A stretch of DNA of 64,000 nucleotides from Saccostrea cucullata (lineage: Eukaryota), in assembly GCF_032062105.1 (NCBI RefSeq), contig NW_026922866.1:62001-126000 (forward strand). The letters run 5' to 3'. Made by a program: the position numbers and the translations under genes. Positions 1,136 through 62,657 of the stretch are shown here, piece after piece. The notes under the pieces were generated by a model. It was not told where the DNA came from. It searched no databases and worked only from the letters and a program-made list of their open reading frames with translations. Position 1 is the first letter of the stretch. Each line of letters starts with the position of its first letter.

Positions 1136-2527
1136 GAAACTTGTACCGCGCCATAAAGCGCTTGCGGAGAAAAGGTAACGTCATATTTCACCTGTACTAT
1201 TACCTATTTCAAACGCAAAATCACGCATATACCGTTTCTCGCAATCATGCATTTTTCACGCACTTTCAAAAGTACTTTTAAGTGTATGTTGTGTCACAGA
1301 TCAGTAAGTTGTAAAGATATACAAGACGTTTTAGCTCTTAAATTGCTCGTTATCATCACATATTTCCCTCATACATGTATTTCGTATATTGATATCACTC
1401 ACATTTTAATTTGTCGTATTCGTCAAAACTTATGCATTTAAAACAAAGCCTGTTTTCAAATATTTGAATTCTCAAAAATAAATTTTCTTGGAAATGAAAG
1501 CAATAAGTCTCTCCTTTATTTTGCTGTAAAAAATTGAACAGTGAATTATAGATAAGTAATTGATTTCGATACTGGCCAATTCCAGACCTAGATCATTTAA
1601 CGTCACTTACGGTTTGGTAAATGACCTAACATTGTTTTATTTCTTCCAATGTGTGAGAAGTGCTGGCCAGGGCAGGACATCAAAATTCTGCTGGGGAATA
1701 AAGTTTCTGACAACACAGACAACATGCAGTCTGGTGTTTTCCAGTTACAGGTTATACGGAATTTGTTTGAACGGTATCGCATAACGTTGATTTATTTCAT
1801 CCTTTAGCGCGCAAATTCGTGTACCTTTTAGGTTTTTTTTTATTGTCAGTAAGCTGGTAAGGGAATTCTGTGACTATTGCTTGCTGAAATTCGACCCTTA
1901 GCCCATTGCGCTACCGCTTCCAAACTGTTGACGTTGCACTACAAGATCCGATTAATACTACCAATATTCGAGAAAAACACATCAGCGACTAGTGCTGATG
2001 ACCAATTAAATTTTTGATTAATCAGTGAACGAAACATGTCTTAAAATGTCTTGCCTTGTATTGAAATTGGTACCTTAGTTAACTCCGACATTACCTCGGA
2101 GCAGTATTGACCGTACATGTATCGCAGGACGTCTAGTTCTGATGTTAAATTCGCACAAAGCGATTATGTACAGTTCTTGTATTTATGCACTTGAAATGCT
2201 ACAGAGAGAGAGAGAGAGAGAGAGGAGATGGTCTGAAAGATTTTTATTTCCGCTAAGTATTGTATGTAGGGGCGATTAATATTTTCTGAACTTGATCTAT
2301 AAAATAATGTCATGTTATCAAGTTACATTATCTTTGTTGACTAAAGGTGCATCCTTACATTTACACATGTTTATGCATTTAGACAGTTTTTAACTTAGGT
2401 GACATTGTAGAATTACACGCCTTATAGAAACAATCATAATTTTGATGTTTTTGAAAAGAGTTCATATTTTAATATTTCAAATGACTGTGAATTAAACTCC
2501 TACCTTTTTAAAATAGTATAAATGTAC

Positions 2528-4276
2528 CTTTCTCAACAATGACCCCCGCAAGTCCACCCTGATGATAAAGTTCTTGGTTGGCAGCATTAACAATCACGTG
2601 GACACGAAGAGCAGTCAAATCACCAGATTTAACTTTTATACTAACACCAGCTTTAGTTATATATTCGGTCATATTTTTATTTGAGGTTTGGCCCCGTTTT
2701 ATACCCGATTCTGAAGAAGTACTCAAAAAATTTGACAAATCTGTCGATCCTTCATCGCCAATTTGAATGTAGCAGGTGTGATGTTTTTCAACTTCAGAAA
2801 TTTTTATTTTGCCGGTCGAACTTTTTAAATGTTTGGCAATTCCTGGTTTCTCAATTTTTTGTTTTTTCCATTGGATCCCATTTAAGATATCCTCTATTTT
2901 TTTCTTAGCTTGGTTCAGTCCCTTTTGGGTCCCTTTAATATCGATTTTATTATTATTTTTCTTTATTTGGACTTGCTGTTCTTTCAAACTTTCAGAAATC
3001 CGTTCAAATTTGCCTCCATGGTGTAGCTCCAAAAATTTAGAAAGACTTGGAGGAATTTCCATTGTATAACTCTTAATAGTATTGTCATGAAGAAAGTCTT
3101 CTATCAGTTCTCTTGCACGGCCCACGTATTCATTCATCGATACAATAATAACTTGTCTTTGTTCTGCTATTGTTATAATCTGGAGAAGGCCCTCGAAATC
3201 TTGTGTACATTCGATGCTTTTTGTTTGTTTCTCCCATTTATCTGTATTTAAAAGATAGACAGAGTCTGGGTTTACATCGATGGGGGACTCTGCAATGCTT
3301 TCCTTTACTGCATGTGCTGCTTCAACAGCTTTATCATCAGAGAAGGCATAACAAATCACCTCCTCTCTCTGTAAAACAAAACAGCTCATATTTCCCTTTT
3401 CTTTCAGTTCCTTTGAAATTCTGGCACTGACTTCCTCTCTGCTTAAAAAAACTTGTCTGTTTTTTGAAAACTTTCCCGCAGAAGCCTGACATATTTGTTG
3501 GCATTTTTCAAAGACTAATAATTTTGCGTGATTGACATCTGAACATTGTCCTTCAAATGTGATAGTTTTTTCCGGGATATCGAAAGTAACTTCTACATTT
3601 GGGAATTTTCTTTCTGTTGCTTCTTTGAAATTATCATCACGAAGTAACAGAAGCTGATAGTGCTTCAATTGCACCCTCTCCTTTACTTGTTGTTTCCTTC
3701 TCTCTAACTCACCTACTACTTTAGATATGATTAGCGTAACATTTTCTCTTAATTCAGCAACCTGATTTTCATAGCCCACGATAACAATAGTGTTATTGTT
3801 CTTTTCTATAACAATTCCTACTTTCTTGGGATCAGGAACATTCAATTTTTGAATTTCTTCTAAGGTTGTCTGCCACGCTTCCTGCAAGACATTCATGACC
3901 TCTACATGTAGATTTTCCAGCAATTTTTTAATGACATCAATCATGTGCTCCTTCCATGTTTTAGCCAATTTTCGACAATCTTTTGTATCTTTCCTTAAAG
4001 TACATTCTACTGTTAATTCTGTGGCTGCTTTGTTTGACCACTTTATTTTACCATATGCCAATTCTGCTTGCTCATTAAAAACCTCTTTATTTTCCTCAGA
4101 ACTGTGCACAAATTTCATCTTTCTTAATTCAAGGTTTCTCACTACCACTGGATCAACCGGCTTGAACTTTGGTCCCTCTTCAGGATTAAATGATTGTCCC
4201 AAGCATTCATGATATGTATGTACAGTCAATTCATTCTTATCAAGTTTATGACTTCTCTGGCAAACTCTGTCGCACA
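2528..4276 (-). CDS. PARP14: PARP14-like gene, large exon (KH-like region and start of macrodomain 1)
   Basis: ORF 2508-4277 trimmed to acceptor cctag| (4276) and donor |gtacat (2528). Ends with GDLT...VIVNAANQELYHQGGLAGVI (macrodomain N-terminus). Confidence 0.85.
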
Positions 4277-7200
4277 CTAGGAATGAAAAGAATGGATAAT
4301 CAATTCTTCATTTTTACAATGCAAGTGAACTCTTAAAACTAATATTTGAATTTTCTTCCTGTCGATTTGTTTTGGACCCTTGACACTTCCAAAATACAAA
4401 TTATATATTTTTTTTCAGCAAATATGTGCAAAATTGGCAAAAATATAATCACCAAAATCAACCCGACACAAGATAATTTTATTTTCTCTGTACATTAATT
4501 GCCCGAAATCATTCTTAGTTTTCAAAAACGAATATTTTTACTCAGCATTAACAAACCATCCTGCTGTATATACGAGTGGTTATCAAAAAGTTCGTGGGCT
4601 GAGGCTATAAAATTAGTACTTTGTAGTCTGTGCTTTCAAAATTTATATGGAAGATAAAACAACAGAAAATTAAGGAATGTTGAAAATTTTAGCCTGATAC
4701 GTTCATTATTTGCCAAATTATTCTAAATTGAAAACAACATTATATGATCACCCGGCGCTGTCGTCGTTTATTTTCATGACGTCCGATAACGTCATTGTTT
4801 TTTCATTGTCCGCTTCTTCTACCTCATACACTTTTTTAATGAGATTCCCTGAATAAAGACTTAAACCCGGATTGTTTATATGCTTTACAAAGTCATGAAC
4901 AGTACCTTAAGTGGCCTTAAATGAATATAATATTCCAAATAAATTAATACATTGGTAGAGATCTGCCGGCATATTTTGCTTTTGGGAGTTCAATATCTAC
5001 AACACATGATCAACGTCGTTTTTTGACGTGATTGATTTTTCACACCTTGACTGCAAATCGACATTAACTGTGTATCCCTCTTCTCTCTGAATCTATTTTG
5101 ACATTAAAAGACAAATACTCTGGATGAATATTATTTCTCTGTAGCCAGTTTTAAGATATTTTCGGTCTATACCAGTATTTTCTGTGGCAAAACTTCCTAG
5201 AATGTTGGAAACGGAAACCCCTTCCCCCTTTTGACGTCACTTTCAAGGCCTCAATTGTTTGGACATTCCGTGTAAAATCTACGATAAAATTTCGTACAAT
5301 TTCCAGAATGAAGTGAAAATTTCATATTTTATGGAACAATTCACCCCTACTAATGTGTTCGGAACCTTTTATTTTTCGGTGTTCTGCAAATAATAAGACC
5401 CGATGAGTTCAGAGTAGCTCTGGCAGTGGCTCTGGCGAGAGTTATCGAGACTTCAGTGAGATAGGGTAAATTATTCACGGAAATGTGGCCAGGAAGTGAC
5501 TAGCACGTGGAGACATGGTAAACAGAAAAGTTATGTTGCGTTTCAGTTTTTACCACCCTAGAATCAACTGATAATGTCTGTAGAAATGTACTTCAATCAA
5601 TCGATCTCTCTTACATTCATTCAAACTTAAATAAGTATTCTCTATAATGCAATTTTCTGCAGTCATGAATTAAAATTTCTTTTTGGGAAAATATTTTTGC
5701 ATGGGAACTGGGACTATATTTTTCGGCGTCAGATTAGCAAATGAGGCACCAGCATGATTTTAACTGACCAATCAGCTAAATGAGTATTGCATTATGGGTT
5801 ACTACGAATACTACAGGAAGTTTACGCTTGAAAAAAGGAAAATCTTATTGTAAATAAAAAAGCATTTTTTATGTTCATGCTCATAATGACAAACAATTCA
5901 TTTGTTCAATACACGGTGGAAGTCTAAGTTTCTGAAAGTCATACTGCAAAAGCGAATTGCGTCTGTATTAATTCCTTTGTTGTACTATCGGTGAATACAA
6001 TTGCCATGTGAATTCCCTGACCGAACACGTGATCATGAACGAAAACAAAGTTTTGTCCATTTGAATGCATAACAGATGCTGCTCGTTTTCCTTACCCTTG
6101 AAGCGCTGGGGCCCGTTTCACTAAAAGGCGTACGCCTGTCTTAACTCTACGACCGGCGTAAGTCCGGACTTACGTCTAACATTTGGACTAAGGTCCGTTT
6201 CACTAAAGGGCGTAACTTTGCGCCCGCCTTAAGTTAAGACAAAAATCTACGGCTGGTCTAAGGCAGGCGTAACTATAGACGTAAACATTGGATAATGGCG
6301 ACTTTCTGGCAGCTTCGCAGAAGAAGAAAGGAAACACCTCGGCGAGAACGCGTTTTTCGGGACCGAACCAACCCTCTCGAGTATCTTGATGATATAGATC
6401 TCGTAAGTAGGTATAGGTTCCCGGGAAGAGTCATTCGAAAACTGATAAATGATGTTGACCCTATTGTGAGGCGACCTACATACAAAAGTCATGCCATTCC
6501 CACCCACATTCAGGTACATGTATATGTGAATGCTTACTGTAGCATTGTATGCTTCTTAAATATCCACACATAAATAAATACTGACACATGGAATCACATG
6601 ATATGACAAATATAATGGGTTTTACAATGTACCTATTAATATAAATAAACTACATTTGCATACTTATTTATACATGTATATATAAAGATACACATAAACA
6701 TCTTACAGGTAATTATCACCTTAAGATATCTGTCAAAGGCAGACTTCTTTTCGGAAGTAGGCGACCTTCATGGCGTTTCCAGATCATCCGTATCCCGAGT
6801 AGTACATACAGGTTGTTATACTTCAATATTTTAACTTTAAAATGATGTCAATTCTATTTTTATTAAAAATTATTGCAGGCATGTAGCATCGTTGATGTGG
6901 AGATTTGACCCCTTGAATGTTTTAACATTTTGTCCCCTGCATTCACAAATGATAATAAAAGAAAAGTGAGCAAGTTAACACATCCCACACCCCTCCCCTC
7001 TTAATATTTGACAATATCATGCAAAATAAATGGCATGTTACACATTAAATACACACAAGTAATTCAAAATGAGGCATAATTCCAAAGTAATCGTTACATG
7101 TACTAAAACTCCGTGCAATTATTGAGTGTTTATTTTGTTCAGATAAAATGTACATAATAAAAAGTACCGGAATTCCCAGAAAAAAAGGAAGCGGAATTTC

Positions 7201-7978
7201 TTTGTAATATGCGCCTACACAATGTGTTCTCAATAACTGCAAAGTTTCACGAAATTAGTTTAAGCAGTTTCAGAAAAGTGACAATTGCAAGTACTATGGG
7301 GTATACTGATAATAATAATTATAATAGTAATATGTACATGTTTGCATACACTATCCTTCATGTTTCTACATGCCTGTAATACATTTAATCAGTTGTACAT
7401 TTCCTTTTCAAATATTCTTTATATATATCATTAAGGATTTTAACGCAGATTCATCATATTGTTATACAGTGTGCAGTGCAATAAATACAACAGTGGACAA
7501 CATTAAGTTTCCAGTTACTGCCAATGAATTACGCCATGTAAAATCTGAGTTCTATGACATTGCCAAATTTCCAAATTGCGTTGGTGCAGTCGATAGTACT
7601 CTATATCTAATACCAATTAAGGGCATGAGTGGTCCACAGGAGCCTGCTTTTGTATGCAGAAAAAACTTTCATGCCCTAAATATTCAGGCCGTAACAGATT
7701 CCAATATGAGGTATAAACGGTATTGATTAAAATATAAATACTAGCACATCATTTTTTTTGTAATAGAAATACCCTTGTATACGCCAAAACTTCAACAGGA
7801 GAAAATTAAAATATTTAATATAATGTCAAAAGGGTTTTATGAAATAGCAACCTTTGAAAATGTAAATGTTGTGAATTTTAAAATAACTTTATGGCACCAA
7901 ATATAACCAAACAAATATAACAAATATAAGAATGCTAATTGTTTGCTTACATATGCATAATTAAGGATAAAAAAAAAT

Positions 7979-8660
7979 TATATAAATATAGCCCTTTGAT
8001 GAGGTCAATCCATAGACATATCGACTTCACAGAAAAGCATATCGACCGAGCACGAAGTGCGAGGTCGATATGCTTTTCTGTGAAGTCGATATATCTATGG
8101 ATTGACCGAATTAAAGGGCTACATTTGTTATATTATTTTACATAGATTAACAAACAAATTATGAAAATAATTGGAAAAGTTTTCTCCCTTTAACAATTAG
8201 AGACTAGAGATCAAAATAAATTACACCGTTTAATGTAAATGCGTTTCCTTTATATTGATGGAGTGATTTAGACGATTTACTTATTCAGAATACTTCATTT
8301 ATTTGATTAAGTTTTGTATCAATATTTGACACACATATCGAATATGTTTTAATTAATATGAAGTAATCCTAATCCAATGCCTTCTTTTGTCTCATCAAAT
8401 ACAGAACATAGAAAAAAAGTTAGTAAAAGTTGAAATAAATATTTTTTTTTCTAGAAACGTCAAATCATACACTGTATTAGCTTTGATTGAATACAGTACT
8501 ATTTTGTTTCACGGAAATTATCTCCATTTTAAGAAACCTCAAGTCGATACGCATTTCAGATTCTATAAATAGTAACTCAAGTCTTTATGCTGTTATATAC
8601 TAAATCATGTGATCAAGTTTGAGCCAATCAGAGAGCCGGGAATAAATGATAAAAATAATA
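7979..8660. mobile_element. Non-coding hairpin (foldback) element in transposase intron 3
   Basis: ~70-bp-arm palindrome 7980-8130 centred on gcac-gaa-gtgc. The putative far end taaaaataata is complementary to the sequence just after the right arm. Confidence 0.6.
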
Positions 8661-9095
8661 TTATTTGATATTATTTCAGATTTCTTCAAATCAATACCTG
8701 TTTACCGGGGCAATTCACGACTCTTTCGTTTTGAGCAACTCGGGATTGTCAGATGTTATGGAACATCTCGAAGGGGGTGGGTGGTTACTTGGGGATTCTG
8801 GCTACCCTCTCAAGGAATGGCTCTTAACGCCATTCTTATCCCCAGCCAATCAACACGAAGTGAATTACAACGATGCCCATGGAAAGACTCGTGTTGTCAT
8901 AGAAAAATCGTTTGGGGTTTTGAAATCCACATTTAGGTAATTTAAACGCAATTTTTCGTTAAATATCTTTATATGTCATATTTGCAAGCAAATATTTTAT
9001 TTCAAACGTTCATTACGATAAACGCGACCTTACATTTTTTTATTTGAGAAAAAAATTATCTATTGCAACCATAAATAAACCTTTTTACAATTTTA

Positions 9096-9325
9096 TTGTG
9101 AATTCATTTAAAATTCTGAGGGCCAATTTTCTTAGATTGTGGGTTTTTTGGTTATTTGTGGAGATGTAATTTCGAGTATGGGTTTTCAGATTCAGTAACA
9201 AAGATATCTCTTTCTAAATTTCCTATGAAGATGTAAATTCGTGTGGTTTGGGGGGGGGGGGGGGGGGGGCTACCAACGAATATCACGAAAATTGAGCCAC
9301 CACGAATTCTAATGATTCCACAGTA
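9096..9325. mobile_element. Small TA-flanked MITE in transposase intron 4
   Basis: Degenerate ends tattgtgaattcattt / aatgattccacagta. Resembles the MITE at 49969-51472. Confidence 0.5.
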
Positions 9326-9628
9326 TTTACATTCAAGTAAATCTTTGCAGGTGTTTACATCGAACTGGAGGAGTACTCCCCTTTTCACCAAGTAGATGTT
9401 CTCAAATTATTCAATGCTGTATCCGGCTTAATAATTTAGCTGTTTCAGAGAAAGTCCCCTTACTTGAGGGTGGGGTTGTACAGAACATCAATGACAATGC
9501 CGTGTTTAACGCAAACGCACCAAGGAGAGCACAGGATGTGCGCATTCAAGTTGCAAATTTATTTTAACAATTCATCTATTCATTAAATCACACACTTACA
9601 TTGTAATAAAGAACATGACTACTATATC

Positions 9629-9855
9629 ATTTATGTAAACCCACTGACAATAGTTTAACTCTGTTTGATATGAAGAAACAAAATTAAGATTAAGTGAATT
9701 GAAAAATGCCATTTATTTACATTATAAATGACTGTATGAAAAAACACAAAATATCATGCATATAAACATATAATGCAGAACCAGAAAAATTGAACAATTG
9801 AAAATATAATCAATTTTGTTTCAATAGATATCAAAGGTGGGGTATAAAAATTCGC
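9629..9855. repeat. Split direct repeat B2 (227 bp; copy B1 at 10262-10488)
   Basis: Apparently identical direct repeat atttatgtaaaccc...aaattcgc. Confidence 0.95.
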
Positions 9856-10005
9856 AAACACCACAATCGTACATATTTTTAGCAAATTAAAACATAAACA
9901 TAAAAAACTATTCTAAAAGAATATGTATCATACAAAACCAATCAAAGATAACTATGCTGACACGGCAATAATTACAGATGGTGTTGGGGCGGGACGGAGG
10001 GCAAT

Positions 10006-10265
10006 TAAAATTACAGCAGAATTTTTGTTTGCGCGTTCACTGACAAGGTTCTGTGAGGGAATGGTGAAAGGCGTGAGAACCCGCGCGCATATCTTAGCAT
10101 CCGACGGCCGAGAATATAAATCATACCAATTTACAGAAAGATCTTCGAGAATTGCTTTAATCTAACGGATAAGAAATTTTGCGATTAAGAAACTTAATTG
10201 CTAGCATGGGTCTGCCGTGTCAGATGTTTTACATAAATTAATTTAAGGATGTAAATTAAATATTT
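10006..10265. repeat. Split direct repeat A2 (260 bp; copy A1 at 19892-20151)
   Basis: Apparently identical direct repeat taaaattacagcag...attaaatattt. Confidence 0.95.
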
Positions 10266-10787
10266 ATGTAAACCCACTGACAATAGTTTAACTCTGTTTG
10301 ATATGAAGAAACAAAATTAAGATTAAGTGAATTGAAAAATGCCATTTATTTACATTATAAATGACTGTATGAAAAAACACAAAATATCATGCATATAAAC
10401 ATATAATGCAGAACCAGAAAAATTGAACAATTGAAAATATAATCAATTTTGTTTCAATAGATATCAAAGGTGGGGTATAAAAATTCGCCACATTATTGTG
10501 TTTACATAAACGCAATAAACCCCATCCTTAAACTATTGTCTTCTAATGAAATGTTAATATTAATGCACAAACATAAATACCACACAGTTTCTTCAAAGAT
10601 GGTCAAGATACTCCTTTATAAGTGATAGAAGGATCTAGTTCAAGCTCCATTAACCAGCAGTGTCCATAATACGTTATAATTAAGTTCACGATCCTCTGTC
10701 ATATTTCATCAAAGTTTCTAACATCACTATTACAGCCAACCGGAATAAACAAACATATTATACATTATATAAACACAACCAGGCGAA

Positions 10788-11178
10788 TAAGTCAGAGGCC
10801 CATGTCCCCGTGACTTAATGTCGAAGAAAAATGAACGCAGTTGTACCTCCATTAGGTTAAGTCAGAGGCCCTTGTCCCCATGACTTACGTGTAAGTTCGA
10901 AAAATCAAAACAGTCCATCCTTTATTTGTAAGGTTAAGTCAGAGGCCCCTGTCCCCATGACTCAAGTTTGAAAATCAAAACATTCCATGCTATATTTATA
11001 AGGTTAAGTCAGAGGCCCATGTCCCCATGACCTAGGTTTAAAATTCAAAACAGTCCATGCTATAAAGGGAAATTAAATATAAATCTGGAAACTTATATTC
11101 GCTATGTCCAAAAACCAGCTGATCGTAGTATGTGTTGATATTTAGTGCATAATCAGAGGCCCCTGTCCCCATGATTAT
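10788..11178. repeat. Array of five 30-bp palindromic motifs downstream of YR
   Basis: taagtcagaggcccNtgtccccRtgactta at 10788, 10858, 10935 and 11005, with a variant ataatca..tgattat at ~11149. Confidence 0.9.
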
Positions 11179-11196
11179 ACTTACTGCAGAAAATAT

Positions 11197-12104
11197 TTAG
11201 ATTTTCAAAACAGGTATGCGTATGTATTTCTTGTATGCGTCGGAATGCCATCGTCCCATCTGTTTAATCTTTTCATCTGAAATACCCATTTCGGCCGCTG
11301 ACGTTGCCGCACCAATTCGAAAACTATGAGTTTTATAGAGTTTAGAATCGAGACCCGACCACTTTAAAGACATTTGTAGAAAGTTTGTAAATTGTTGCCT
11401 TTGGATTCCATGACCATCAGGGTAAGAAAAAGGGGACCCATGACTTGACCCCTTAGTGTAATAAATGACAATAGTGCTTGCACTGGACAGAGCCCTTCAT
11501 CGGAATTACTAGCCTGTAGAAACAAGGTGGGAATATGTCGGCCAGAACTGTGCTTGAAAGAATCAGGTCTTATTTCTAGGCCTTCTAGTGTGTTTGATTC
11601 GTCTCGAACAAGCTTAACATTTTCCAGTAGCAAAACATTACCTCTGTGATGTCGAGATGTGATAGTTATTTCCCCCACTCTTAAGAAGGCATGGAAGGCC
11701 AACAAATACATTGATTTTAGCATGCTGCGCTGGTAAAATGAGATACTTAAATGATCAATCGAGTCAACTAAATTTCTTAGAATAGACGGTGTTATAGGCA
11801 GCCTCGTATTCCCGGTACCTGGTTTTAACTTTTCATACCCTTGTAGCATTTTGCGAATTACAAAAAGCTGTGTTACGTCTTGATAGCCCTTTAATTTAAA
11901 TATATATCCTAGAGCTGATAGATAACTTTTCAAGGTCGACGTCGCCATGTTGGATTGAAAACAAAAGGCTACAAAAAGTGCGACATGTTGAGATGATGGT
12001 GGTAAGATGGGGACGTTTGGATATTGGTTGAACATGAAGGACTTATAACATGTAAAAGCTCTATCGTATGATGACCTAGAAGCTTTAGAAAGTGAACTCT
12101 GCAA
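11197..12104 (-). pseudogene. Tyrosine recombinase of the Ngaro element (1 frameshift near 11429)
   Basis: AFHAFLRVGEI, LCPVQAL; after the frameshift, HSFRIGAA...MGRWHSDAYKKYIR (R-H-R-W-Y catalytic set). Confidence 0.92.
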
Positions 12105-12124
12105 AATGAAGTCTGCTAGGTTCT

Positions 12125-35347: not shown

Positions 35348-35568
35348 TTTACTGTGCTATTTATTATAGTAAGACAGTTAATCCATGATGCTTATAGCTA
35401 GGACTTCGCTTTCAGCAAAACCCGACTAAAATTACATAAGACTAAGCTATATTTCAATGTAAATAACTAATAACACTGTCAATTTTAAATACATTCATAC
35501 TCTGGATGAAAAAAAAACATGCCTAAAAGCGTTATAGAACGAAACAATGGTCGACAAACATTCGAGAT

Positions 35569-36098
35569 TATTACCTAACCTACGATATAAAGTGTAATTA
35601 AAGTGTAATTAGGCATTTTGAACTGTTTTACGATTCATTTTTTGTTTTTGCGTGATCATGAAACAGTGAACTGTTGACCGGTCCACAGAATGAACTGTTG
35701 CCTCTTTAAAGCGTCATAGTGATATTCAAGCGTTTTGATGATCACGACATCACATCCTGCTATATAATTAACTAAATTGGAATAAAACACATAAACAATC
35801 AATTAATTAAGTATTAGTTAAAATTATTAATTATTGATTTAATCTTTACATTCTGTGTTCAGCTAATTAATAGACTGGTATGTGGATAATCAGTTGTTAA
35901 AACTCTTTATTGATTGTTTGTGTGTTTTTATTCCAATTCAGTTAATTTTATAGTAGGTTAGGTAATAAAACACTTATTTAATGACTGCTCGGTGAAACAG
36001 TTAAACTATTGTCCCTCGAGCAACAGTTTCCCAGGTCTTTTCCACTACCTCGGGACAATAGTTTGACTGTTTACCTCGTAGTCATTAAATAAGTGTAT
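35569..36098. mobile_element. Non-coding hairpin element with internal inverted end-junction
   Basis: Left end tattacctaacctac is complementary to 35953-35967, which abuts the palindrome 35968-36098. Also contains inverted repeat 35757-35956. Confidence 0.65.
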
Positions 36099-36429
36099 AA
36101 TACATGCTTTACTTTTAGGCCTTTTACAGATTTTTATAAAACATTGTATATGTACTGTTACGGTGTATAATAATATTATTATTATTAATAAACACGTGTA
36201 TTCATATTAGTAGATGTGGATAGAATTTTCCATGTTCTATTTTACTCTCAACAACTTTAGTATTTATGTAATTTGTGTAATATTCAGCAAGGATTAAAAA
36301 ATTATATAAACATGTTAATCAAAACATGCCAAATAGAACAAACAATTTTGATTCTGGTTTATTCTGTATATTTAATAAAAGATGATGATTCATCACTCTA
36401 TTTTAAGATGTTTCCAGTGTTTGAAGATA

Positions 36430-41010: not shown

Positions 41011-41956
41011 AAGATTCTTCATTATCTTTATATATTGTTACGCAATTCGCCAAACGATTTTTAACAAATACGAATATATTCGGCCAATAAAATGCTTTGA
41101 TATAATGCACTGTTTGTGAATTTATTAGATGCACATCTTCATATGAAAGAAATTGTAAAATTTGATTCATTTGCAACAGTAACTATGAAATTCAATTTAA
41201 AATTTGCTTAAAAGTTATGACTTTATGCAAGGATTTTCAGTGGAAAAATGCTTTTGTAAATATAAAAAATTTCCAAAACAAAATCCTTGTGTTTCTATAC
41301 ATGGCTTTAGTTTCCCTCAAAAATTAGAAATGCATGACATGTACACATCAGTACGAGGGTTGTCCGCAAAAGCCGCAGACAATGTTTATAACTTTGCTAA
41401 CATGAATCCTATACTAACCAAACTTTGCATTGACGTTATATATTCAATGTTCTTAAAAAGTTTGAATTCTTAAGCATATATCTTTCATATTAATAATTTT
41501 TGGGCGATTTATTTGAAGGTCGATATGATCTGTCGGCGCTTGAACAAAAATCGAATTATTTACGTATATAACTGTAATAGTTATACTAGGTATACGTAAA
41601 TAATTCTTAATTTCTTTTGTACTATAAAGAACATAGAACTCAATTTGAATCAGTGAGACTAGAACCAAAATCTTAACAACATGTCAAATTTTCATATAAA
41701 TAGCGTTAGAAACAGACGATTAGTGTCATGGTTTAAGTGCTGACTGAATTAAGTTTGATGAAATGACGTCATAAAATGCGTAAGCGGCGCAAGAAGATGT
41801 AATAAACTGTTATGGATGTGGTGTATATAAATCAGAGACGGGGAAAAAGTACAGAAGTTACATAACACACTAAACTCTAATAGAGAAACTGATTTTAAAT
41901 GGAATAAGATTAAATGATAATTTTTCTCTATACCGAAAAAAGCTACCGCACGAATA

Positions 41957-43562
41957 CGAGGGCTGTTCAATTAAGAAATGAATTTAATTTTTGAAGATTC
42001 ATGAGGTTATGAACTACGACGCTTCACGCCGGCATATTTCATGAAGCGCGTTAGCGCTTCATGATAAATATGCCGGCGTGAAGCGTTGTAGTTCATATAC
42101 CTCATGAATCTTCAAAAAATTAAATTCATTTCTTATATTTACATTATTTTTCTGATGACTTGCCATAAATTTATGCAGTTCAACTGTCATTTTTTAAAAC
42201 AAAACAGTGTGCACTATATTTTTTGACTTTTGACGTCAAGAGCGGTATTATGACGTCACAATGGAGATATTCATGCTTATTCGTGATACATACCTAATGT
42301 AGTTCATGAGAAAATATACTGCATTTTATTTTGTAAAGAATCATAAGGGAAATTTATTGGAAATGTAAATATTAAATAATGTTATCGGTGCTCGGAAAGA
42401 AGCAAACGACGCTTTTCAATGATTTAATCTTCATGATTTTACTTATTTATCTCTTTTAATTCAAACTTATGTCCGTAACATTTTTTATCCAATTTCTGAT
42501 TGTTTTTAGGTCAAAAATCTGGCAAATATTGTTAATGTGAAAAAAACATTAACTTTCTGTTTATCCCGAAAACCCCTTTACTCTTCAGGGCATGCGGGTT
42601 TGGACGCTGTCATGAAGAAATTCGACTAGTGGATTCCTGATTCTGGGTCCTTCCTCTAATAAACCTTTCGATTTTTTTTTCAAAAAAATTGTTTTCTAGA
42701 CGTCTCCAGATATTAAGCTGTCTCCCCGAATACGAATTTGAACAGCAATACCACTAATATTTTAGAAAATTGCATATAAATCTGTCTTTGTGCCCTTGCA
42801 TACCTTTGCGTTTGTCAGACCTTTGCAATTTTAATCAAGTACTTCATATGGTAAATTTTGTTTTGGTGATTTTAAGCAATAGATTCATATTCCAATATCT
42901 GTTTGAATATAAAACAAACGTGGATTACTACAATCACTGATATTTTAAAATAAGTGTTTAGACTTTCTTACACGCTGTCATTTTCACCCATTTTTCAAAA
43001 TATAGGGTAACCTTTGAGTACCAAGCGTTTTAAGAAACGTTAGACAAATTACTCCCGATATGATGTCTAACAAATTTGCTATGTGTCTTTCTAAAAGTCA
43101 ATCATACATCATCAAATATTATTTGTTGAAATTTGGAAAACAATACATAAGTTGTTATAATTTTTGTTGGCAATGAGGGTAACCATTTTTGATGCTCATT
43201 GATTGTATAATTTTTATCATTGAAATCCATCTGCTCTTTTGTCTATAAATCAGGCACCAGTTGCTGTAAATGACACATATTTCAGTGAATAGTACTTTTG
43301 GATTTTTAACAAGTTTTACAACAGCTTTAATGTAGCCTTTATTTTCACTCTAGTTTACTGATTCTTTACCATTCGTTTATAATGCAGTGTCTCGAAAAGC
43401 CCTTGTTTCCCAGTTTCTCACGATGAAACTATGTGAATAAAAGTGGTCACATAAACTGTTATTAATTCAGTAAAGATTCAATAATAAGAGAAAGTTTTAT
43501 GCCAAATGATATCTGTATTGTACGTCATACTGTTCAGGACATAATTTATTGAACAGCCCTCG
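41957..43562. mobile_element. Non-autonomous mariner-like element, copy 2 (left TIR split by an insertion)
   Basis: TA-cgagggctgttcaat[insert]aaataatg ... cataatttattgaacagccctcg-TA. Confidence 0.8.
41972..42372. mobile_element. Non-coding hairpin element (~400 bp) with internal inverted end-junction
   Basis: Near-perfect ~80-bp-arm palindrome 41972-42135 (loop gcgc-gtta-gcgc). Right end aatgtaaata is complementary to 42136-42145. Boundaries are fixed by the interrupted host TIR. Confidence 0.8.
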
Positions 43563-61629: not shown

Positions 61630-61772
61630 ATTAAAAGGGCGGATTTTACGCGGGTTAATGTACGAGTATCGCTCCATTCATTAAAAGTAATGGGCTCCGG
61701 CCCCTTCGGGGCCTCGGCTCCATTACTTTTAAGGAATGGAGCGATACCCATACGTTAACCCTTACATAAATA
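61630..61772. repeat. Long palindrome with central ggcccc-ttcg-gggcc hairpin
   Basis: Arms gggttaatgtacgagtatcgctccattcattaaaagtaatgg / ccattacttttaaggaatggagcgatacccatacgttaaccc. An extra arm copy lies at 60917-60941. Confidence 0.75.
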
Positions 61773-62657
61773 CATATATGCACATGTATAATATTACTAT
61801 GATTGTCCTTTACATGAATTCTTTGGGTTTTGTTATCGGTTTAGCAAGCGTTTCACGCTAATCAAGTTTTTCTTCAAACGTTTCATATTACTTGCATTTA
61901 ATTTATCTTCATGAGAATACCGGCAATACACTTGTATTTATTCCTTACTTTGCTTTACAAGTAAAAACAAAAATCAAGCGATACATTGAATTAAATAAAC
62001 AGGAATTCAAACAGGAATAAGAAAAGAAAGAAATGATAGTTTAATATAATTTATTATAATTCTAATATATATATATACTGAACATTTGAAGCAGTCACTA
62101 AAAATCTAATTTTGCACCAGCCTTAAAAGTTTACCGTTTAACTCAAGCTTCAACTCCACCTTCGTGTAAGCAATGAGTTAGAAAATTTGTAGCCAAATAG
62201 TTCTGGCAAGATCTAAAAAAAAGTCAGCAAAGAAATCTAAAGAATTGTGGTCACCTGCTTTGTTGCTTTGTGTCGTATTACATCACACCCTGATCCATGG
62301 CATATACACCGTATCACGTCATTCAAAAGTTATCCCCAAAGTAAATTTTTTTTATAATTATGTTTAAACTTAAAAGCCAAGATCAATGGTTTAAAAATCA
62401 TAGCATGCTTTGAAACGTCTTGTCATAGGTAATGCACGTGTCAAATATAAAAGTTTCACTTTTTCTAAATCAATGAAAAGTTTTAAGAAAAGATTTCAAA
62501 AGTACGTCAAAGTTCAAGGTCNNNNNNNNNNNNNNNNNNNNNNNNNNNNNNNNNNNNNNNNNNNNNNNNNNNNNNNNNNNNNNNNNNNNNNNNNNNNNNN
62601 NNNNNNNNNNNNNNNNNNNNNNNNNNNNNNNNNNNNNNNNNNNNNNNNNNNNNNNNN

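Follow-up and report, generated by a model that had tools for sequence, protein, structure and literature searches.

A 64,000-nucleotide stretch of the Saccostrea cucullata genome (contig NW_026922866.1, positions 62,001 to 126,000 of the forward strand; hereafter the window) harbors a short element, named Family 1, together with two sequence-unrelated elements of the same layout, Families 2 and 3. Family 1 was confirmed to be a real, young, high-copy, non-coding transposon. Together with Families 2 and 3 it probably represents, with a likelihood of roughly two in three, a non-autonomous rolling-circle element of the Helitron-like-2 (HLE2) group (Helitron2/Helentron; 'HINE') that is mobilized in trans by a resident RepHel-endonuclease and carries its ends in mirrored order. 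A preliminary description, made from the letters of the window, had proposed these elements as a structurally defined class of candidate minimal parasites of a tyrosine recombinase (YR). This class assignment was abandoned in favor of the Helitron2/Helentron type on account of the ends that were found, namely an 11-nt asymmetric repeat by a hairpin, insertion at T/T (the slash marks the insertion point) and no target-site duplication (TSD).

Family 1 is composed of a long hairpin at its left end, an interior and an 11-nt asymmetric terminal inverted repeat, of which one copy forms the 3' end and the other lies beside the hairpin foot (Table 1). The near-perfect hairpin of about 165 bp with a mini-loop that had been noticed before was refined to 164 nt with a GTTA loop. 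The earlier claim that the joined ends equal the reverse complement of an internal stretch proved exact, as 42362-42371 followed by 41972-41982 gave the reverse complement of 42125-42145 at 21/21 bases. This match requires the right end to be placed at 42371; when T42372 is counted, the joint of the ends carries two T's, and the single internal A42135 can pair with either terminal T. The internal complement of the joined ends results from an asymmetric repeat standing beside a terminal hairpin with zero spacers. Folding of the whole element as single-stranded DNA yielded -111.4 kcal/mol, compared with -35.3 ± 4.4 for shuffled sequences (z -17), and the structure consisted of two helices abutting at the element ends; the right half alone displayed modest folding only (z -2.85). 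The interior (42146-42361) contained no open reading frame of note, and neither a microsatellite nor a central tandem repeat was present in the element.

Two short palindromes recur in Family 1. The hexamer TCATGA occurs five times in its 401 bp (41999, 42039, 42059, 42102 and 42304), four times within the hairpin, and the CRE-like TGACGTCA occurs twice in the interior, at 42231 and 42251, 20 nt apart. Both may serve as binding sites for proteins.

Table 1. Coordinates of the elements in the window, parts of Family 1 and its target site (window positions, or positions relative to the insertion point where signed).
Feature	Position	Strand	Description
Family 1 element	41972..42372	+	401 bp, non-coding; written in the sense with flanks T/.../T
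Terminal hairpin, arms A and A'	41972..42135	+	164 nt, near-perfect, begins at element base 1; nested inverted repeats and minimum-energy fold
Apical GTTA loop	42050..42053	+	closed by GCGC and GCGC; arms 42034-42049 and 42054-42069, 4 nt between
Inner 11-nt inverted repeat B'	42135..42145	+	abuts hairpin foot, no spacer; A42135 common to B' and A'
Terminal 11-nt inverted repeat B, the 3' end	42362..42372	+	100% complementary to B'
Internal 'splint'	42125..42145	+	exact reverse complement of joined ends
Two TGACGTCA palindromes	42231..42258	+	interior; cargo with no assigned role
Left target half	41968..41971	+	c-a-a-t in window copy; family consensus Y-A-T-T
Right target half	42373..42380	+	consensus T at +1 and T at +8, A/T-rich between
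Target position	-4		T or C in 29/30 Family 1 copies
Target position	-3		A in 26/30 Family 1 copies
Target position	-2		T in 20/30 Family 1 copies
Target position	-1		T in 29/30 Family 1 copies
Target position	+1		T in 23/30 Family 1 copies
Target position	+8		T in 26/30 Family 1 copies
Family 2	35568..36096	-	same layout, older, 80-90% identity; at least 401 candidates, matches bounded ~35567-36099
Family 3	7979..8661	+	same layout, young, 91-99% identity; at least 1,438 candidates
Ngaro-type YR retroelement	9629-20151	-	split direct repeats 100% identical
Fourth hairpin, candidate only	61652..61761	.	42-nt arms; weak 9-nt candidate partner at 61933

A search of the species' own 1.17-Gb assembly returned 1,805 first-look candidates for Family 1, of which 40 were scored. 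All 40 scored copies covered bases 1-401 collinearly at 96-98% identity, and the proposal of small, structurally defined, non-coding mobile elements thus held for a 401-bp unit with exact ends. By an exhaustive pattern count, the last 26 bases were found at 373 genomic sites with at most one mismatch (reversed control 0). The first 26 bases were found at 708 sites (reversed control 0), a count inflated by copies in which both hairpin arms match. An alignment of 30 copies, used for both divergence and flank statistics, revealed a mean divergence of 1.7% from the consensus, with changes that were mostly private and 2.4-fold enriched at CpG. Per site, the hairpin carried 1.1% substitutions, the interior 2.2% and repeat B 0.3%; repeat B matched the consensus at 329/330 bases. 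This pattern is that of a recent burst followed by neutral decay. No covariation was seen in the hairpin among the 30 copies, where changes were private and uncompensated; this is expected of neutral decay after a burst and speaks neither for nor against the structure. A search of a phage collection with the element gave no match.

A lone hairpin arm (L025, C1887:5478-5558), comprising bases 1-81 at 100% identity, was encountered 224 bp from a full Family 1 copy, and this full copy lies at the center of a flanking palindrome.

The insertion site of Family 1 is well defined. Its target reads Y-A-T-T / T plus a T at +8, and it is strand-specific with an asymmetric upstream motif; positions +5 to +7 of the right flank are A/T, the background being 34% T. 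The right target half, T w w n W W W T, is similar to element bases 1-8, and this likeness would fit one nicking specificity for donor and target. No TSD was present in the flanks of the 30 copies, including any of 2-9 bp, and in one copy lying inside another in the opposite orientation (L030) at most one base had been added relative to the family consensus. The preliminary description, which had seen no clear duplication beyond about 1 base, was right in this respect. Models with a TSD of TA (Tc1/mariner), TTAA (piggyBac) or TWA (Harbinger) were rejected, as the TA in question belongs to the constant sequence of the element and neither end is an inverted copy of the other.

Head-to-tail joints provide a further view of the insertion preference. 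Four such joints of Family 1 were found, all in the two-T form (control 0), and the count of one-T joints was 0, a single match being the internal complement of a deletion variant. The two-T joints would arise if the same Y-A-T-T / T site were used twice, since the first bases of an inserted copy restore the preferred site. For the window copy itself, an insertion into a terminal inverted repeat (TIR) had been suggested, yet this was not confirmed. Its left flank (41722-41950) belongs to another repeat, of which at least 211 candidates sharing about 76-82% identity were recovered. Paralogues of this repeat (~80% identity) are palindromic at the insertion point and loosely fit a T/T empty site. 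Insertion within a GTT/TAAAC-like palindrome would agree with them, but they are too diverged for a clean empty site, and, the right flank of the window copy not being part of the repeat, the paralogous comparison is at best suggestive.

As had been foreseen, elements unrelated in sequence share the design, and both Family 2 and Family 3 showed the same layout at high copy number (Table 1). On the minus strand Family 2 reads T / hairpin - inverted repeat ... inverted repeat / T, and in window orientation its flanks are accordingly A/.../A, with a 23-nt repeat at the left end and a paired copy at 35946-35968, which is followed directly by the hairpin up to the right end. Its flanks were read in 11 copies and in two head-to-tail arrays, one on each of two contigs, C6178 and C21811 (L065 and L069). 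In the hairpin-first sense, the upstream (inner) copy of each array was 3'-truncated, both times after AACAGT and at different element positions. This hexamer is present three times inside Family 2 as well as in the hairpin loop, and it may act as a premature termination or nick signal. Family 3 carries a hairpin with 83-nt arms at its 5' end and a 10-nt repeat (8130-8139 / 8652-8661). Its matches begin at ~7977-7979 and end at ~8661-8664, and most copies have T on both sides, as judged by the extent of the alignments.

A 15-nt exact match was observed between the Family 2 arm (35998-36012) and the repeat of the Ngaro element in the window (9646-9660 and 10279-10293), 17 nt from the end (E 0.005 in a small search). 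A related GTTTAAAC-like palindrome is situated at the Family 1 insertion site in the host-repeat paralogues. Both resemblances are possibly due to chance.

The assignment to HLE2 rests on the comparison of these ends with those of known elements. Helitron2 possesses asymmetric terminal inverted repeats, one terminal and the other subterminal beside a hairpin, and its authors proposed that replication ends at a point fixed by base pairing between the two repeats (PMC3627910). An asymmetric or subterminal inverted repeat of this HLE2 kind (8-15 nt), with the inner copy adjoining the hairpin, was recognized in Families 1, 2 and 3. Helentrons and HINEs, including DINE-1 and the oyster Cg_HINE, insert at TT without TSD and form arrays (PMC4067079 and its supplement 2; PMC7492417), and the target of FoHeli1/2 is TNAT/T (PMC5148889). 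Family 1 likewise inserts at T/T without TSD, with T at -1 in 29/30 and at +1 in 23/30 copies. Head-to-tail arrays with truncated inner copies, a further HLE2 trait, are represented by the Family 2 arrays and by the four direct joints of Family 1; 3'-truncated inner copies in such arrays have been described for Helitrons (PMC7492417). The present families are similar to canonical HINEs such as DINE-1 and Cg_HINE in being non-coding and high in copy number, in having 11-15-nt repeats with one copy by the hairpin, and in TT insertion, lack of TSD and arrays; in both cases Helentrons occur in the same genome.

The difference from canonical HINEs lies in polarity. Published HINEs, read on the T/T strand, have the terminal repeat first and the stem-loop last (PMC4067079 supplement 2), whereas the present families are mirrored on this strand and are devoid of a microsatellite or central tandem repeat. 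A mirrored layout is already known within HLE2, in the 'HLE2-reverse' elements FoHeli3-5 of Fusarium and the proto-Helentron of Phytophthora (HELIANO, PMC11417382), and these are the nearest precedent for the hairpin-first layout of all three families (PMC11417382). They are fungal and oomycete elements with RepHel genes, whereas Family 1 is non-coding and resides in a bivalve host. Family 1 is further set apart from HLE2-reverse by a 164-nt hairpin that abuts the terminus on one side and the repeat on the other, without any spacer, and by a defined target, Y-A-T-T / T, while the insertion preference of FoHeli3-5 could not be established (PMC5148889). Owing to the mirrored layout and the 164-nt hairpin with zero spacers, the three families are best placed as an HLE2 variant and not as canonical HINEs.

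A possible enzyme source is abundant. The Helitron_like_N domain gave at least 471 candidate loci in the genome; all 150 that were scored passed the Pfam cut-off, 148 of the 150 had no stop inside the match, and open frames reached 2,848 aa. Relatives of these Rep loci, the closest of them from Saccostrea, combine OTU, DUF6570, Rep, PIF1 and endonuclease domains in the manner of Helentrons. Several loci are mutually 95-99% identical, which points to recent activity. The genome has a potentially active RepHel source.

Several observations nevertheless weigh against the HLE2 assignment. In all three families the hairpin stands at the 5' end of the T/T strand, the side opposite to that of canonical HINEs, and a 164-nt hairpin with zero spacers is far beyond the published stem-loop range. 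Pattern searches found no RepHel-coding element with the termini of Family 1, and patterns that kept 25 bases of either end while forbidding the adjoining bases of the element returned only indel (deletion) variants. Among the places listed, paired 5' and 3' ends on the same contig and strand lay 1.3, 1.6, 2.6, 4.1 and 11.5 kb apart. These pairs occupy C566:198762-200071, C3354:80159-81768, C3524:4892-7501, C5294:30227-34314 and C2254:3473-14964, respectively. The four shorter pairs exceed a rough chance estimate of ~0.15; the 11.5-kb pair (C2254) could be due to chance. Only one of the Family 1 3' ends listed was close to a Rep locus, at ~4.5 kb (C6624), which is near chance given that ~0.13 would be expected among the places listed. 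Moreover, a related Helentron from Saccostrea echinata (L085, JAVQLB010000044.1, ~1486-15960), 88% identical to one Rep group of the present genome, has canonical ends unrelated to Family 1. It is ~14.5 kb long, and a single stop interrupts its 2,209-codon frame. Its 5' repeat is palindromic, and its 3' repeat precedes a short stem-loop, the repeat being 14 nt and the stem-loop ~13 nt from the 3' end. Its gene runs in the same sense as the canonical end layout, and extra left and right end modules flank it on both sides and form arrays. In a second Saccostrea echinata Helentron (L086) the element ends were not identified.

From the observed anatomy, copy number, youth, target motif and lack of TSD of Family 1, we infer the enzyme and each of the following steps. 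An HUH Rep domain would nick Y-A-T-T / T at the hairpin end, a helicase would peel off the strand, and the hairpin would fold. The emerging 3' end could then pair with the inner repeat at the hairpin foot, by which both ends would come to lie side by side on the continuous internal splint. The paired ends would mark the termination cut and be joined into a rod-like single-stranded circle, which would insert at another Y-A-T-T / T site without duplication.

Next to the HLE2 assignment, a doubtful alternative is a self-splinting single-strand circle transposon whose enzyme is neither RepHel nor YR, for example one of another Rep/HUH lineage, with a convergent likeness to Helitron2. The failure of the pattern searches to reveal a partner with Family 1 ends is consistent with it, as are the mirrored layout with its very long hairpin and the extended target of ~12 nt with T at +8 in 26/30 copies. 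The specific short target by a hairpin-bearing left end also recalls IS200/IS605. These elements (IS608, ISDra2), whose single-strand transposition was reportedly worked out by Ton-Hoang, Guynet, Barabas and colleagues, resemble Family 1 in having a hairpin-bearing end, no TSD and insertion 3' of a 4-5-nt motif that is kept at the left end. They pass through a single-strand circle with abutted ends but are prokaryotic, use the Y1 TnpA and have hairpins at both ends, and no Y1_Tnp homologue was found in the present genome. The search for the Y1 transposase (PF01797) gave 0 matches there and was positive in 6/14 control genomes, and an IS605-like system was rejected on this ground. The plentiful, seemingly intact Helentrons offer a ready enzyme, and the mirrored layout is known within HLE2 (PMC11417382), both of which argue against an enzyme from outside. 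It is equally doubtful, though conceivable, that the three families stand for a distinct lineage of self-splinting single-strand-circle transposons. In such a lineage the giant hairpin would work at the initiation end and not at the termination end, targets would be selected for their likeness to the left junction of the element (Y-A-T-T / T...T at +8), and the enzyme would come from either a hitherto uncharacterized RepHel clade of reversed strand polarity or a non-Helitron source.

The view of the preliminary description, in which minimal non-coding elements parasitize a YR of DIRS/Ngaro or Crypton type supplied in trans and the internal junction copy resembles an internal complementary region (ICR), has become improbable. 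In its favor, the joined ends of Family 1 are complementary to an internal stretch at 21/21 bases, a geometry like that of the DIRS ICR. No TSD exists, YR retroelements are present in the window, and the left junction (-3 to element base 1) reads ATTT, the core duplicated by Ngaro, in ~60% of copies. The Ngaro of the window was used as an internal standard for YR behavior. Its split direct repeats (9629-9855 = 10262-10488; 10006-10265 = 19892-20151) accompany an open frame for reverse transcriptase (RT) and RNase H at 12125-13414, and its ATTT core marks each end and occurs one further time at the internal junction (10262-10265). In contrast to this core, perfect at both ends of Ngaro, the right junction of Family 1 can read ATTT in only 12/30 copies, and the left-flank variants (AAT or ACT) are not mirrored at the right end. 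No crossover core is thus shared by the two ends of Family 1, and since the right end does not vary with the left flank, nothing is duplicated.

Further considerations point away from a YR. By reasoning, a circle of 402 nt with three T's at the joint would be required for core exchange; the joint encoded by the internal complement has one T and is two bases shorter. The joined ends of the three families matched the Ngaro junction no better than shuffled sequences did (p 0.09-0.58), and no YR-coding element with the termini or junction of Family 1 was found in this comparison, which covered the Ngaro in the window. The strand-specific T/T target with an asymmetric upstream motif follows the HLE2 pattern, and an ICR-like geometry is equally produced by the Helitron2 design. 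Of the earlier picture of fold-back, circularizing mini-elements, the structure, the internal juxtaposition of the ends and the existence of several families were retained; a YR is not the likely enzyme. The ICR of DIRS-1, reportedly described by Cappello et al. in 1985 and by Poulter and Goodwin in 2005, remains a structural likeness, in that the internal stretch of Family 1 is complementary to its joined termini and could hold them in a single-stranded intermediate. DIRS elements, however, belong to the retroelements, measure several kb and carry long inverted terminal repeats together with RT and YR genes, and neither a link to RT or YR nor long inverted terminal repeats or a duplicated core was found in Family 1.

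It is highly improbable that the element is two units joined by chance, a fold-back hairpin of the miniature inverted-repeat transposable element (MITE) type at 41972-42135 beside a small element with 11-bp TIRs at 42135-42372, or else a DDE-type MITE: each half can fold alone, and the genome holds hairpins with both arms matching the 5'-end pattern plus one half-arm fragment, but bases 1-401 are collinear in the 40/40 best copies, the unit as a whole has neither a TSD of 2-9 bp nor TIRs spanning it, and two unrelated families have the same two-part layout. As the termini of Family 1 are not mutual inverted copies and no TSD is present, a DDE MITE or foldback element was rejected.

By experiment it is not known how HLE2 elements recognize their ends. 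Helraiser, the biochemical model, is a canonical Helitron whose 3' hairpin serves as terminator. The three families described here are abundant, two are young, and with respect to the nicked T/T strand their hairpin occupies the opposite end, with no spacer separating terminus, hairpin and inverted repeat. With its 401 bp, the Family 1 element offers a compact substrate for examining whether termination is set by pairing of the asymmetric repeat, and for identifying the strand that is cut. Possible points of interest for the Helitron mechanism are the occurrence of a mirrored layout in an animal, the giant flush hairpin and the target mimicking the left junction. For annotation, structure-based Helitron finders built around a 3' hairpin would overlook bivalve families numbering hundreds to thousands of copies, or give them the wrong orientation. 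An internal complement of the junction, as in DIRS, is by itself no evidence for a YR.

Elsewhere in the window, minus-strand open frames at 2508-4277 and 25824-26498 encode KH and RRM domains of PARP14 type. A PARP14-like gene seems to host the transposons of the window in its introns.

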